From contig NW_003314347.1 of NCBI RefSeq assembly GCF_000143415.4, forward strand, positions 124,001 to 188,000: DNA of 64,000 nucleotides. The letters are read 5' to 3'. Each line of letters opens with the position of its first letter. The first letter of the stretch is position 1. Shown here piece by piece: positions 3,935 through 11,263 of the stretch. The notes beneath the pieces were generated by a model, which did no database searches, was not told the DNA's origin, and saw only the letters and a program-made list of their open reading frames with translations. Made by a program: the position numbers and the translations under genes. The DNA comes from Selaginella moellendorffii (taxonomy: Eukaryota; Plantae; Lycopodiophyta).

Positions 3935-5308
3935 ATGTCGGAACAAAGCGTGCTATCTTTCGCTGGAGATGGAGAAGATCAAGACGCGAGCTTCCCCTTC
4001 TATAGACTCGAGACCGGGAGGCGAAAGTACCAGCAGCGGAGGCTCAAGCCACAAGCGGAGTCACTGGAAAGAGAGGCAGTGCTGAGCAGCAGCGAGAAGC
4101 TTGGTAGCAGCAGCAGGCCGAGCGGGAGAAGGAAGAAGAAGTTCGTGGGAGTGAGGCAAAGATCGTCAGGGCGCTGGGTGGCGGAGATCAAAGACACGAC
4201 GCAGAAGATCCGGCTATGGCTGGGGACTTTCGACACGGCGGAGGACGCCGCCAGAGCTTACGACGAGGCGGCTTGCATGCTCCGGGGCGTCAACACGCGC
4301 ACGAACTTCTTACCGGCGGCATCGCCCTCGAGCGGCTCAGTTCTTCCGTCCAAGGCCGCGCGGACGCTCCACCAGCGCCTGAAATCGGCCAGAGGGAAGA
4401 GCTCATCAAATCCATGCACTGTAGCTCCAAAGAAAGGGGAAGATGAAGCTCAAACCATGATTTACAGCTTTAACCAGCTCCAGTACTTTGGCGACGAGGA
4501 AGAGCTCGGCAACGTCCAGGCACAGCCACTCCATGTCCAATCCTTCACCACCTTGCTCGCCAACGATGGCTTCCCAAAGTTCTTCCACCACCAAGAGCAG
4601 CAGCGCGATCTCTTCACTGCCAAAACCACGCCAGGGATGAGCGATCACCAGGGAAGTATGGCTACCACCTTTGATGGCTTTGGAGTAGCGGCTATGGAAG
4701 TTCTTCCAGGAGCTCCTCCTCCAGGAGCCCAGGAGCTCGATCGCCGGAACTCTCCAGCCAGCTCGGATGATCTTAGCGACACTCTCTCGGGGCTGGAAGA
4801 GCTGGTCGTCCAGAGTGGCGGAGAGGGCGACTCCATCTACACGTCGCTCTTTGATCTCTCGGTGGACATGTCCATGCCTGGCAGCGATCAGTTCGAAGAG
4901 CTCTCGGCGATCACGGGCTTACCAGAGGCTCCCAGCGATCTCCAGCTCCCCCCTAGCGAGAGCGAGGAGAACATGATCCTGCGCGAGCAAATCCGGAGGC
5001 TGAATTTCGAGAGGATCTCGTCCGCGTCGCTCTACGCCATGAATGGGATCCAGGAGCTCTGCCTGATGAGATCCAGTGAGACTACGAGCAAGAATTCGAT
5101 TCCCATCACCAGCTCACCTTCTCTGTTTGGACGATCGCCGCCGTGCTGTTCTTCCAATTCTTCTTCCTTCCTGGTGGCATCGCCAGCGGCATTGTCGTCG
5201 TGCAAGATCATGCAAAGGTCGCCTGGATGGGGCGGAGCCTCGCCTGGCGCTAGCGGTGATTGCAATGCGGATGGGAGCTGGGGAGCTCACCTCTGCCGCG
5301 TCGCCTAG
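3935..5308 (+). CDS. AP2/ERF transcription factor (single AP2 domain, intronless)
   Basis: AP2 domain [44 protein letters not shown]...TRTNF in a 457-aa ORF. Confidence 0.93.
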
Positions 5309-5745
5309 GGCGAGGAGGATTGATCGATCGATCGAGAAAGCTTTGCCCTAGAGGATGGAATGAGAGATTTATGCACGAATTTGCTCTCGGATTGGAGAGA
5401 GCAACGAGTGCAAGTGAAGGATCAGGCAGCGAACACGCGGCATTCTCCCTGCTCGGTGGCTGATCCTCCATTCATTCAAAGCTTCCCAATAAAACCCCCA
5501 AAAGGGATTTGTTCTTGTTAGGGTTTTAGAGCATAGCGTCGATAGCGCGATGGAGCGATCGCGCCATGGAGTGCATTCTAGTGTCGCGCTCGCCCTCGCA
5601 TTTCATCTACTGGATGGAGCGCCAACGAGATCGGGACGAGGTCTGCGTGAAATCTCGGTATTGTTCCTGAAAGCGATTTCTTGGATTGATTTGCTTTGCG
5701 CGTAGAATTTCTACCGATTTCTTGTTTTGTGCGTAGAATTTCTGC

Positions 5746-8335
5746 GTGTTCTTTGGACTGCGAGGATTACGTAAAATTTCGCTGTTTCTTTGCAGGAGGG
5801 ATCGATCATGGACGCTATCGCCCATGATTGTATCCATCCATCCAAGCCATGCCAAAGCTGGGAGCGCGTGGCAAGCAATGCAGGGATCAAAACCACAAGG
5901 AATACGACAAAGCTTTTGCCGAGACTCTCAAGGTACCTATAGTCTTTACAAGCAAGTAGCGATGGAAAATCTCTCACCCATCATGGCGTGTTTGTTGCGG
6001 TGCCTTTCAGAAGATTCTCGCGGCCAAGTTTGTGGCCTTGCAGAAGGTGTCGTTCATATCAGTGATCGAGCTCGGGATACTAGCAGCTCCAGGGCTGGGG
6101 TCTGGGAGGCCGAGCGCAAGCTTCTTTCCTCCGCGTTCCATACGGTTGCAAGCTGCCTGGTAGGATGGGAGCGATCTGGCTACTTGAGCACAGGCAGCTG
6201 CAACGAGGTGATCAAGGAGCTCCTGCGTGTCATGCACACGGGTTTGCAGATCATCCCGAGCTCCTCAGGAAGCAGGAAAGGATGGAAGGTCAGGACGCTG
6301 TTTATCGAGGAAGAATTCAAATTCGTGCTCCAGCAGCTCCGGGATCTCACACACCTGGTGAGTGTTTTGCTGCTGGGAGACGAAGATCTTCCTCACGTCA
6401 GTAAATACCAGGTCAGAGTGATGGCTATGGTTTCGGTTGCTGATATCGATGGTCTACGCAGTGAGCTAGAGAATGCTGCAGCTCTGGACAAGGACGTCGT
6501 TCTAGAAAAGCTGAGCAAACGGCGAAGGGGGTACGAGGAGCTGAAAAGGATCATGCTTTGGGAAGGTGACCGAGGAAAGCTCGAGATCAACCACAGGCAA
6601 CTGGTGTTGGGAAAACTCATCGGCTCTGGCACTTTCGGACTGGTTTACGAAGCGGGTTGGCTCCATCAAATTGTTGCGGTGAAAATATTCAGGCCGGGAG
6701 ATTACAGCTTCGAGAAGGAGTTTACTGCCTTGGTAACGTTGCAACAGCATCCCAACGTTGTCAGCATCATCGGCTTCACGCGTGATGTTGAAGGCAAGCA
6801 GTGCTCAATCATCATGGAAAGGATGAGTATGGATCTGGAGAAATTTATAGGCGAGAATAAGGGGGCTGCAGGAGTTCCTCTCGTCACGGCAGTGTCGATT
6901 ATGTTGCAGATAGCGGAAGGGATGGCTTTCTTACACTCGAAGAATGTCATACACAGGGATCTCAAGCCGCGTAACATCCTTGTCAAGTACTTGGAAGTTG
7001 GGATCCTCACAAAGATCTCGGACTTTGGCACGGCCAAAACGAACTTCTCTACGTCTCAAGCTGCGAGTGCCACGGTTGGAGTTGGCACAAAGATTTACCG
7101 AGCACCAGAAGTCTTCCGCTCTGAGAACACGGACGGGAAGGCAAAGTACTCGAAGAAGGCGGATGTTTACAGCTTTGCAATCATCTGCTGTTACCTGGTG
7201 ACCGGAAGGCTGCCGTTCGAAGACATCATCGAAAGGATTGACTTTGCGATACTGGTCTGTGCTGAAAATAAGCGTCCGCAGCTACCTGTGGACTGCCCGG
7301 AGGAGCTAACAACACTTATCCGGAGCTGCTGGAACCGTAATGCCGAGGAGCGGCCAACTTTTGGAGAGATCTGTGACCGTTTGAAGCGTCTACGATCGCT
7401 TGTGCTAAGCGGAAGAAGCTTCTGGTACGAAGCCTTTGACAGCCAACTTGGAACGACCTCTCGAGTCAGGACGTTCTCACAGCCGGAAATCGCAGAGGCC
7501 TTGACGAGAAACGAGAGCAAATGGAGCGAGGGATCAGCTTACCGGGGAATACTGGTCACTGGAGAGGAGGTGGCTGTGGAAGTCTTGCCATCGGGCATTG
7601 TGGAGGCCGAGCTCAACTTCTTTTGTCGAGTCAGCCATCCAAACATCTTGAAGCTCATCGGCTATTGCAACGAGGGAGGACGATTCTCGACCGTGAGCGA
7701 GTACATCACGCAGGGAAGCCTCATTGAGCACCTCCATTTTGGTAAGAGTTTTCAACTTCTCTAGGAGTCACGCGATTTGTGTCCAGGGCACAGATACAAC
7801 AGTGTTTCACTAGACTGGACGCGAAGAATTGATACTGCTATAGGAGCTGCAAGAGGACTTTATCACTTGCATGAACTCGAGATAGTTCATGGCAACGTCC
7901 ACCCAATCACCGTGTTCTTGAGTGGAGACAACTCAGAGGGAAAGATCAAGTATCCATTGTCGTTAGAAGCGCCGCAGTACGAGGTACGTGGCTTTTAAAT
8001 CAAAGCTGTAAGCTTCTCATCGTTTTGGACAGGACTACGCTGATCCAGCCGGAGTTCTATCCACGGAGAGCGATGTGTACAGCTTTGGGGTGGTAATGCT
8101 GAGGCTAGTGACAATCCAGGCCGCGAAGCAGCTCCTCAAGAACAGCTTCACGAAGCGCGGCGTCCAACACTTCATAGAAACGCATGTGGATCCGGAGCTG
8201 CTGGTTCCAGAGCACAGGGCGAAACTCAACTGGTACCTTGAGCTGGGGATGAGGTGCTTGGCACCGGAAGTCTCCCACCGTCCTTCAATGCGTGATATCG
8301 TCCTCCTCCTGCTAGACATTCGAAAGTGGGGGTAA
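5746..8335 (+). CDS. Tandem kinase protein: helical N-terminal domain, TKL/Raf-like kinase, RLK/Pelle-type pseudokinase; true start uncertain (possible upstream exon near 5550-5640)
   Basis: Kinase 1 has GSGTFG, VAVK, HRDLKPRN, DFG and APE. Domain 2 is assembled across GT-AG introns 7742-7786 and 7984-8032 (…HLHFG|HRYN…LDWTRRIDTAIGAARGL…PQYE|DYADP…SDVYSFGVV). Confidence 0.88.
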
Positions 8336-8502
8336 GCCATGCAAACGATCTTGCTTTTTCATGTTTGCTTCTTTTCGAACAGTAATCGAGCAAATTGAAT
8401 TGATCGAAAGAGAAGTACCAATATTTCGCAGGAGCTCCAAAACTGTGACAAATTGTATAAAGAGTAAGCTGCTCACACTTCAAACCTACGAAAGCACGTC
8501 CT

Positions 8503-11263
8503 TTACAAGTCTCTATGTTTTCCATCTTTCAGGATTTGCAGTGTGTACTTCTCCTGGAGACGGGCTCGTCTCGCGCGCTTTGCCTTGACCCACGCGGGCT
8601 CCTGAAAGATTAAAACAATGTGAGCGAGAGAGCTCCATGACCAGTGGAGTACGCACCTCAGGAACAAAGCACTTGAAACCAAATTTTGCGAGTAGCAAGA
8701 GGTGTTCCATCACGAGTATAGCGGCCATCCCCGGTTCTACGTTCCATTGGCCAGCTTCGTCATATAGGCACACCAGCAGTGCACAGTTTGTACAGATAGC
8801 CACCACACCCATGTACTGCAACAACAAATATGATATCATTTAGCAGTGAGATGTGATTTCTCCGGTCACACAAACCTGAAAGATTTGGAGCCACGCTCCA
8901 ATGGATGCCGCCTCTCGTGGTCTGGGCCTTCGAAACATCAGCAAGAGTTTGATTGCGTCCGAGCGTATCTCCACCAAATTGTTCTGATAGCAAAGAGGTT
9001 TGCTTAACTATGATGAAAAGAGTGTGTTTTGAGTGAAATGACTTACGATGAGAGCAAAAACGAAGACCAAGGGAAACGAGCAAGCAAACATGGTAACCAT
9101 GCCGAACTGTAAGGCGAGTTCTAGGAAATCTGGAAAGAATTAAGGTCGTGAGTATATAGCCAAGGCAGTAAGATTTCAATAGTACCGTCAAATAGTCCAT
9201 CTTCCAGATCGTCTCCAACACTGGAACTATATTCTGGTTTCAAATATTCCTCTTCGACTGGCGAGCGTATTTTCTTGTCATCCGATTTTTTATGTTCCTC
9301 GTCATGCCTGCTTGAATGTTTAAACGCAATGCTAAGATACAAACAAACTTACTTCGTAGCTTTATGTTTCGCATACAAATACGAGAACCATGGTACCACA
9401 TTTTCAGAAATGTTGCTCATTATCTGTACACAAAAAATGTTGTTTTCACGACGTTTTTTGTTAAATCATGAAGCCATACCTGGGCGATTATCAGTCGTTG
9501 AACAAGGAAGTGCCGTAGCACAATGAAGTCTCGATGAAACAATGCATGGTAAAACAAGCCGATGTAAGACTGCATGAAATAAATCCCAAACACCTGTACA
9601 CGAGAAGAGCTTTTAAGAAGAAAAACTTAACAATGGCACCCTACCTTGTAGATGAGTCCATCTGATTCAGCCTCTTTGCTACCATAGTGCTCGGTCTTGG
9701 TAAGCTTCACTGCAATCTTCCCTCCAAGATTGGTAAACACTTGAATTCCTAAGAGATATATCACCGTTAAAAAATACCTGCAAGATGGAAGTCAAGAAAA
9801 CTTAAGAGACAGTGAGACCAGCAAAATCACCTTAGTACTTCATATGATGCCATCTTGTTCATGTGTGCGTATGCAAGCTCGAAAGGAAGTTGAACGAATA
9901 TGATTCCCACAATAACAATCCCATTATTTCTCGCACTTTTCAGCTGTTCCAGCCATTCCTTCTTCTGAAATGCCTGCTTCTGCAGCTTGTTGATATCCAT
10001 CTCATGGATTCTTCCTGCCTGTATCCCGCCCTCGTTTGTCACCGCCGCAAAATCTATGTTCTCCGCCTCCTCAGGCCCTTCGCTGCGATCTAAAGAAACT
10101 CCCCACCTGCTCAGGAGTTATCAAGCCAAGACAAGTTTAATTCCCAAACAAACCTTGTAAGCAGTGCTGCGTTTTTTCTTTTCCAAAACTGCAAGAAGAG
10201 CACTGACCAAACCACAGTCATTACAGAAAGGGCTACAGGGAGAGCAGTTCCCCATGGTCTGCAGCAAAAATTAAGTGAAACACAGCAATGCGAAGGGAAA
10301 CGAGATTACCTTGATTCCTTGTAATAAAAGAAAGCCGCCACTATAGACGGAATGACAAGCCACTGCGTATACATTCCAAGAAACGCAAAATATATAGCCA
10401 CCTGAAATTCTAAACATCATAAGACACACTTGTTTTCAAAATTGCCAATCACCTTGGCACCGAAATACGCGTGGATGGCATCTACAGGTTGCGACGTAAG
10501 CCCTTTGAAATTCATTGCCCAACCTTTCAACAATTCATTACGCGTGGTTTCATCTGAGGAAAAGCAAATGAAAGAAAATAATAAAAAAGGCAACAACTGC
10601 ATGCTAGAAACAGACCGTGAAGCACGAAGACATCCTTAACAACTTCAGAAGCCTTGAGCACTGCAAGCATGTTCTCTCCCGGTTTTAGCTCTAGCTCCGA
10701 TGATTCACCCACCGTGAACTTCACAGGATGGTCTTTCTCATTAGCCTGGAGAGAAGTGCCAGTCAAACCGCAACAGAAAGCATTAAACGATGCCATACCA
10801 CACTATACAACAGGTACTCCATGCAACTGTATTTTTCTGTCCAGGTAAACAACGAGTTGCTGATTGCTTGTCGCACAAATGCATCTCGCTTCTCCCAAAC
10901 AAATGGTACTTCTAATCCTGTAGGAAGAATAAAAGTGAGAAAAGTTTTAGCCTTTGTTCGATCGGCAAACAAACCAAGGTAAGTCGATTTCTTGATGTTG
11001 AGCTTCTCCGCTGTGCGACCAACAACCTCGATAGGTGCCGCGATCTGAAAAGCCACAAGTAAACGAAAGCAAAAGCGTATAAGAAAACTTACCTTGATGA
11101 ATCTGATCGAATCCAAGCCCTCTTCGATCTCAACGACGAGGCCACTATTCTTCAACGCCTTGATATAGCTCGCCACAGCATCGTTGTCAGACCCGGGGCT
11201 GTGCTTGCTGCTCGCGACCGCGATACAAATCTCGAAGCGCGGTGCTGCATCCGATGACTCCAT
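8503..11263 (-). CDS. Anoctamin/TMEM16-like membrane protein, multi-exon
   Basis: Exon peptides [61 protein letters not shown]|EPAWVKA. ATG at 11263, TAA at 8503-8505. Confidence 0.88.

Follow-up and report, generated by a model that had tools for sequence, protein, structure and literature searches.

Introduction

Plant MLKLs are known from seed plants, mainly angiosperms, and the members described there are pseudokinases that end in a serine-rich tail (10.1101/681015). In the Arabidopsis proteins (AtMLKLs), the HeLo domains kill cells, and they are buried by the brace and the pseudokinase (bioRxiv 10.1101/681015). Pm13 is a resistance protein in which a four-helix bundle (4HB) is joined to an intact kinase (PMC10951266). 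In tandem kinase-pseudokinase proteins (TKPs), whose role as immune receptors has been studied mainly in cereals, contacts within the molecule restrain the C-terminal pseudokinase until the binding of an effector releases it (bioRxiv 10.64898/2026.08.07.743466). The 92 TKPs surveyed by Klymiuk et al. (2018), a set in which Selaginella was not included, are composed of receptor-like kinase (RLK) families such as WAK, LRR_8B, RLCK_8 and L-LPK, and contain no other domain (PMC6170490). Here we present the analysis of a gene from the lycophyte Selaginella moellendorffii, located in a stretch of 64,000 nucleotides of contig NW_003314347.1 (positions 124,001 to 188,000; assembly GCF_000143415.4), which we call the window and to which all coordinates refer. 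Its product is very probably a cytosolic protein of three modules: an MLKL-type four-helix bundle with its brace, a TKL kinase with intact motifs, and an RLK/Pelle pseudokinase.

Results and Discussion

One spliced gene encodes a helical region and two kinase-like domains

The region 5500-8500 of the window corresponds to a single plus-strand gene, represented at NCBI by the Selaginella moellendorffii model XP_024517653/652 ("pyk3-like", 822/823 aa). Its coding sequence consists of the segments 5566-5657, 5796-5932, 6011 (or 6014)-7741, 7787-7983, 8033-8331 and 8383-8398, and the spliced product is identical to the public proteins P0004 (823 aa) and P0001 (822 aa). Exon 3 has a NAGNAG acceptor, at which the use of 6011 gives the 823-aa isoform and the use of 6014 the 822-aa isoform. 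A word search with the N-terminal region as query returned one cluster and nothing else, namely the gene's own isoforms annotated as "dual specificity protein kinase pyk3" (822/823, 783 and 659 aa). This cluster spans two scaffolds, which are two haplotypes. The window represents the P0001/P0004 haplotype, with 100% identity in the first kinase domain (kinase 1) and agreement at the haplotype-specific residues.

Splicing was checked by aligning to 5300-8700 the contigs of the four public runs X1, X2, X3 and X7, which come from four different studies. The RNA status of these runs is otherwise guessed; we take the contigs to come from RNA because the introns are absent from them at GT..AG borders. 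The joints 5933-6010, 7742-7786 and 7984-8032 were found in all four runs, the joint 8332-8382 in three, and the joint 5658-5795 in two (X1 and X7). Contigs of 1.4-4.3 kb span kinase 1 and every exon of the second kinase-like domain (kinase 2). Both kinase domains are present on one spliced mRNA, and the gene is expressed.

The six coding exons divide the protein as follows. Exon 1 (5566-5657, MECIL…) follows the P0001 sequence, with the start codon of the NCBI model, and exon 2 (5796-5932) is defined by the transcript joints. Together they encode an N-terminal extension of about 76 aa without a counterpart in the relatives, which begin within about 10 residues of helix 1. Exon 3 (6011-7741), whose acceptor is fixed by the joint 5933-6010, encodes the bundle, the brace, kinase 1 and the N-lobe of kinase 2. 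After the 45-nt intron at 7742-7786, removed in the long contigs of all four runs, exon 4 (7787-7983) provides alpha-E, the degenerate catalytic loop HGNVHPIT and a shortened activation segment of kinase 2. Its C-lobe (SDVYSFGVV…, …HRPSM…; Pfam 1.7e-5) is encoded by exon 5 (8033-8331), and exon 6 (8383-8398, with the stop codon at 8396-8398) adds a short C-terminus ending in …KWG-NRAN, in agreement with the joint 8332-8382 and with the C-terminus of P0001.

The original prediction, made from the letters of the window, had proposed that one spliced gene joins the three parts, and the GT..AG joints in the transcript contigs bear this out. The start that it gave, 5746, is merely the opening of an open frame, while the coding sequence begins at 5566; its exon set was incomplete, with the short 3' exon at 8383-8398 overlooked. 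The sequence strings that it quoted are all found in the translation of 5962-7740. In the main form, transcripts do not stop at 7764, 7742-7786 being spliced out in all four runs. Retention of this intron leads to a stop codon at 7762-7764 and corresponds to the 659-aa NCBI isoforms P0006 and P0007; the contigs are uninformative as to how frequent this form is. Translation starts at the ATG of 5962 or of 5983 were considered and rejected, since both fall within 5933-6010, an intron missing from the contigs of every run.

The N-terminal region resembles the MLKL bundle and brace

The N-terminal region was compared with known proteins through its relatives and through structural models. The closest relatives of kinase 1 carry an N-terminal region of equal length, and 23 of 30 such N-termini in the alignment match Pfam MLKL_N. 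Aligned with the N-termini of these relatives by hhalign, the Selaginella sequence gave an E-value of 6e-5 and a probability of 65%, in the same register as that found by MAFFT, with the positions EL..VM..G..L, W and A..D...L aligned. A BLASTP alignment with the paralog P0025, shifted by one helix (E 0.002), was rejected, since MAFFT and hhalign agree on the other register. Among protein-language-model neighbours of the region were the PUB10_N, DUF7792, MCAfunc, RPW8 and MLKL_N clusters, with scores of 0.93-0.80.

In the AlphaFold2 (AF2) model of this region (predicted local distance difference test score, pLDDT, 68; predicted template-modelling score, pTM, 0.64), four long helices are followed by three brace helices. 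The bundle (6016-6375; helices at residues 2-24, 32-54, 64-80 and 91-121 of the model) is predicted to be MLKL_N/HeLo-like, and the brace (6397-6570) would lie between it and kinase 1. When the model was compared with 48,161 representative chains of the PDB, the human MLKL N-terminal domain ranked first (Z 13.6, root-mean-square deviation 2.9, 146/152 residues aligned), mouse MLKL fourth (Z 11.7) and AtMLKL3 seventh (Z 10.9, 196 residues). A model of the N-terminus together with kinase 1 reached a pTM of 0.82, and its first match in Foldseek was the whole chain of AtMLKL3 (6ka4_A; E 1.8e-17, TM-score 0.68/0.63, 519 columns). The remaining kinases aligned to the kinase part of this model only, with TM-scores of 0.46-0.50. 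Taken with the relatives, the models support the assignment of the N-terminus as an MLKL/HeLo-type four-helix bundle with brace, as the original prediction had suspected of its helical N-terminus.

An intact TKL kinase is followed by an RLK/Pelle pseudokinase

Kinase 1 (6589-7419; Pfam PK_Tyr_Ser-Thr, 1.8e-53) contains all catalytic motifs: GSGTFG, VAVK, the alpha-C Glu, HRDLKPRN, DFG and APE. It matched 2,722 sequences in the PDB, and the top two were the cryo-electron microscopy chains of Arabidopsis MLKL, 6KA4 and 6LBA (AtMLKL2/3), at 1e-35. They were followed by B-Raf, C-Raf and MLK/DLK, by a small margin (114 bits, versus 127 for the AtMLKLs). A tree built from 47 kinase domains placed kinase 1 as sister to the Selaginella paralogs P0025, P0027 and P0028, with 47% identity and a Shimodaira-Hasegawa-like approximate likelihood ratio test (SH-aLRT) value of 88. 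As judged by its motifs and its relatives, kinase 1 is a TKL-type kinase of the plant-MLKL lineage and is predicted to be catalytically complete. The original prediction had called it TKL/Raf-like and complete, in line with the presence of all motifs and with AtMLKL2/3, then Raf, as the best solved relatives.

Kinase 2 is spread over three exons and starts at the usual beginning of RLK kinase domains (R-FS-Q-PE-I…), with an N-lobe at 7450-7741 that shows RLK/Pelle similarity, a shortened G-loop, VAVE and a conserved alpha-C Glu. Its closest solved relatives were SymRK (1.9e-24) and Pto (5.7e-23), followed by PBL2, BRI1, FERONIA, LysM-RLKs and IRAK4, while CTR1 and Raf scored far lower, at about 1e-9. 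A word search recovered RLKs at about 30% identity and none closer. The losses affect the catalytic residues: VAVE replaces VAVK, HGN replaces HRD (in HGNVHPIT), Thr replaces the catalytic Asn, and DFG is absent. In addition, the stretch from HRD to alpha-F is 16 residues shorter than in SymRK. Elements of the fold core are retained, namely the alpha-C Glu, alpha-E, the alpha-F Asp and the alpha-H/I Arg. By these sequence features kinase 2 classifies as an RLK/Pelle pseudokinase, as had been predicted from VAVE, HGN, the missing DFG and the eroded G-loop. No counterpart of kinase 2 was found elsewhere by the word search, nor was an ortholog of the three-module layout found. A fusion confined to this lineage is the probable source of the third module.

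Comparison with related proteins

A closely similar described architecture is that of AtMLKL1-3 (PDB 6KA4, 6LBA), in which a HeLo-type bundle, a multi-helix brace and a TKL-like kinase fold follow each other in the same order. The AtMLKLs are pseudokinases (HGELNPSN, no DFG and, in the alignment, no VAIK Lys) and end in a serine-rich tail; by contrast, kinase 1 of the Selaginella protein is intact, and its C-terminus is an RLK/Pelle pseudokinase. The host, a lycophyte, also lies outside the seed plants for which the family has been described. The Selaginella paralogs P0025, P0027 and P0028 ("mixed lineage kinase domain-like", with a single kinase) share the N-terminal layout, the junction and the intact motifs, and are the nearest relatives of the bundle as well as of kinase 1. 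Their C-terminus, unlike that of the present protein, is not a kinase but a helical EDC4_C-like region (a weak Pfam match, 7e-6). The sequences suggest that, as a rule, the MLKL-type kinases of lycophytes did not become pseudokinases.

Proteins from mosses and peat metagenomes (P0015 and P0017 of Sphagnum; P0016-P0023) also have a bundle (MLKL_N) followed by two kinase-like domains, one of which is often degenerate. In the moss proteins both domains are TKL-type copies from one clade, whereas the second domain of the Selaginella protein comes from the RLK/Pelle group. Since the moss kinase domains form one TKL clade, they arose by internal duplication; with an RLK/Pelle addition in Selaginella, it follows that layouts with a bundle and two kinases arose at least twice. 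In six of the moss/peat-metagenome proteins (P0016, P0018, P0020, P0022, P0023 and P0030), the first kinase is degenerate and AtMLKL-like (HGELKCSN, with DFH or DLR for DFG) and the second TKL kinase is intact, so that the order of the dead and the active domain is reversed with respect to the Selaginella gene. We found no description of moss or peat-metagenome proteins that combine MLKL_N, a pseudokinase and an intact TKL kinase. The kinase search also gave Sel1-bearing relatives from Diphasiastrum and Ginkgo (P0036, P0048). On the level of sequence, these proteins fit an MLKL-like scaffold with changing C-terminal modules.

The original prediction had presented the protein as a tandem kinase. 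It does share with the cereal TKPs (WTK1/Yr15, RPG1, Sr62 and RWT4; PMC6170490) a cytosolic polypeptide in which an intact kinase precedes a degenerate one, and some of those proteins are likewise fused from different families. The term does not extend to the rest of the protein: the surveyed cereal TKPs are built from RLK families and have no further conserved domain, whereas kinase 1 is of TKL type and is preceded by an additional 4HB. Proteins of the Pm13/R3AK type of Poaceae, which have been proposed to execute cell death directly, also have an MLKL-type bundle, a brace and an intact kinase (PMC10951266; 10.64898/2026.08.07.743466). The kinase of Pm13, however, is RLK/Pelle (LRR_8B) and is not accompanied by a second kinase-like domain. 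Animal MLKL with RIPK3 offers a comparison of working principle only: a bundle executioner is controlled by the state of the adjoining kinase-like domain. In that system the adjoining domain is dead and the activating kinase is a separate protein, whereas here an intact kinase lies in the same chain. The protein would therefore be better filed as an MLKL-family member with an active-looking kinase and a captured receptor-type pseudokinase than as a tandem kinase. No description of a 4HB, a TKL kinase and an RLK pseudokinase in one chain was found, a provisional result, since our coverage did not extend to the survey of TKPs across plants by Reveguk et al. (2025).

Haplotype differences and an allele-specific intron

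Codon differences between the window and the other haplotype (L001, GL377585.1) were counted on joined exon coordinates. The coding sequences differ by 25 synonymous and 25 non-synonymous changes, and the frame is open in both. The counts are small when divided among the regions: 2 synonymous and 8 non-synonymous in the N-terminal extension, 8 and 7 in the bundle and brace, 11 and 6 in kinase 1, 0 and 2 in the linker, and 4 and 2 in kinase 2. By these counts kinase 2 looks unlike freely drifting sequence, and the 76-aa extension resembles such drift.

An alternative 50-nt GT..AG intron lies within exon 3, at 6412-6461 on the plus strand, and its joint was found in runs X1, X2 and X7. Its removal brings a TGA codon immediately after …HVSKYQ, leading either to a bundle-only product of about 210 aa or to a target of nonsense-mediated decay. 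The spliced contigs carry the alleles of the window at 6465 and 6494, and the joint was seen on the window haplotype only. The last exon base, 6411, is G in the window (CAG|GT) and T in the other haplotype (CAT|GT, changing Gln to His). In three of the four runs, the depth of the spliced contigs was similar to that of the unspliced contig of the other haplotype. No unspliced contig of the window haplotype at 6412-6461 was found in runs X1, X2 and X7; in run X3 both haplotypes were unspliced.

Proposed mechanism and alternative explanations

How might such a protein work? We tentatively propose that brace and kinase 1 together would restrain the bundle in the resting protein, much as happens in the AtMLKL tetramer. 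The bundle would be released if kinase 1 switched its state or altered its contact with the pseudokinase, and might then oligomerise at a membrane and cause ion flux or cell death. The pseudokinase could act as bait, attracting molecules directed at receptor-type kinases, or it could be an internal regulator of kinase 1. A sensor, a switch and an executioner in one protein, as put forward in the original prediction, would be plausible. Taken as a whole, the three-module architecture together with this mechanism is likely to be the best explanation of the locus. A bolder version would have bait, switch and executioner act within one chain: a molecule that targets receptor-type kinases binds or modifies the pseudokinase, the state of kinase 1 changes, and the freed bundle damages membranes, with the allele-specific bundle-only product of 6412-6461 as a second route to activity or as dosage control. 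We consider this version quite improbable.

Several observations weigh against the three-module reading and its mechanism. The 203 N-terminal residues matched no Pfam family (E<=1, and also none at <=0.01), phmmer against PDB sequences gave a chance match alone (E 1.2), and an exhaustive HMMER search with 186 N-terminal residues against 1.84 billion representatives returned 0 matches. There was no direct profile match of the N-terminus to MLKL_N, DUF1221, MCAfunc or RPW8, and phmmer and jackhmmer against 127 kinase relatives recovered its own isoforms only. With Foldseek, the model of the N-terminus alone gave nothing significant in the PDB (AtMLKL3 was 27th), and a shape search of the ESM Atlas gave uninformative helical matches. 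The THATCH and talin bundles also score Z 10-12 with this model, as helical bundles reach high Z by chance. The AF2 model, of middling confidence (pLDDT 68), was built on the alignment of relatives bearing MLKL_N and may inherit their fold; such an alignment also went into the model of the N-terminus with kinase 1. A start at 5566 would place about 76 fast-changing residues before helix 1, unlike any relative. Much of the RNA from the window haplotype may be spliced into the truncating form. No three-module ortholog exists among the proteins found, so conservation cannot speak for function, and neither an NLR nor any other immune gene is located within 6 kb. Kinase activity, cell death and an immune role are predictions for this protein.

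Other explanations of the same data have to be considered. The gene could encode an ordinary TKL/MAP3K-like signalling kinase, with a helical N-terminus that regulates or oligomerises rather than damages membranes, and with no link to immunity or cell death. The NCBI name, taken from Dictyostelium pyk3, would suit such a protein, as would the nearly equal scores of Raf/MLK and the AtMLKLs, the lack of a direct Pfam match for the bundle, and the finding that the immunity conferred by AtMLKL is itself separable from cell death (10.1101/681015). Yet AtMLKL3 is the top match of the model that covers bundle, brace and kinase, to which the other kinases align in the kinase domain only; the relatives bear MLKL_N at the same position, and MLKL entries take ranks 1, 4 and 7 among the 48,161 chains. 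An ordinary signalling kinase is accordingly a rather unlikely reading. That the fusion is an artefact of annotation or assembly, with two neighbouring genes joined by read-through, is extremely improbable. The 45-nt intron is indeed very short, with an in-frame stop if retained, and the RNA status of the runs is guessed. The same GT..AG joints nevertheless recur in four studies, within contigs of 1.4-4.3 kb that run from kinase 1 to the 3' end. Contigs without introns can derive from RNA only, both haplotype scaffolds carry the same structure, and kinase 2 starts exactly at the kinase-domain start, without an upstream exon of its own.

A different objection accepts the fusion and questions its meaning: kinase 2 could be a decaying passenger, a fragment of an RLK or receptor-like cytoplasmic kinase (RLCK) captured 3' of an MLKL-like gene and now drifting, while the protein works as a plain 4HB-kinase, in the manner of its Selaginella paralogs. 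A passenger would be expected to look much like this, with every catalytic residue lost, the segment between HRD and alpha-F shortened by 16 residues, no ortholog and no relative nearer than about 30% identity; the 659-aa NCBI isoforms, moreover, end within the unspliced 45-nt intron and lack most of kinase 2. Such a fragment would fit less well with three in-frame introns that are precisely spliced, with dominant contigs that contain kinase 2, with a frame open in both haplotypes at 4 synonymous and 2 non-synonymous differences, and with the retention of the alpha-C Glu, alpha-E, the alpha-F Asp and the alpha-H/I Arg. We therefore regard the passenger explanation as unlikely.

If the bolder version of the mechanism is true, the gene would provide a lycophyte with a self-contained cell-death sensor based on MLKL, whereas MLKLs and tandem kinases have been studied in seed plants and cereals. 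Judging from sequence, this lycophyte has MLKL-type proteins with a kinase that is still active-looking, one of which captured a receptor-type pseudokinase, and mosses reached a similar layout of a bundle and two kinases by a separate route. The value of the case is limited for now, being one gene in one species, known from sequence, transcripts and models. It offers a natural test of whether the ancestral plant MLKL kinase was active, and of whether a four-helix-bundle executioner can be gated by a pseudokinase that has been added to its own chain.

The 5' end of the gene and its neighbours

Residues 1-76 (5566-5932) could form a disordered stretch; alternatively, translation might begin downstream of 5566. 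An adapter-flanked contig end suggests that the transcript begins near 5528. An out-of-frame ATG in good context is located at 5550, 16 nt upstream of the annotated start at 5566, and its frame remains open for about 100 codons, a stretch that takes in the first two joints; the main open reading frame (ORF) may consequently depend on leaky scanning. Run X2 contains an alternative acceptor of the first intron, with 5657 joined to about 5737 (window 5656-5736).

The gene is flanked by an AP2 gene upstream and by an anoctamin gene downstream, on the opposite strand, and no other kinase was found in the window. The upstream neighbour is a single-exon ORF of 457 aa at 3935-5308, resembling AP2/ERF transcription factors (region of a YRGVRQR-type motif), and the gene table of the other haplotype has an AP2 match at this place. 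On the downstream side, at 8400-8700, the 3' untranslated region of the gene overlaps the 3' end of the minus-strand anoctamin-family gene. One 4.3-kb contig that extends from kinase 1 crosses a CT..AC joint at 8601-8655, which is an intron of the minus strand, and further alternative joints were observed at 8461/8464-8532.

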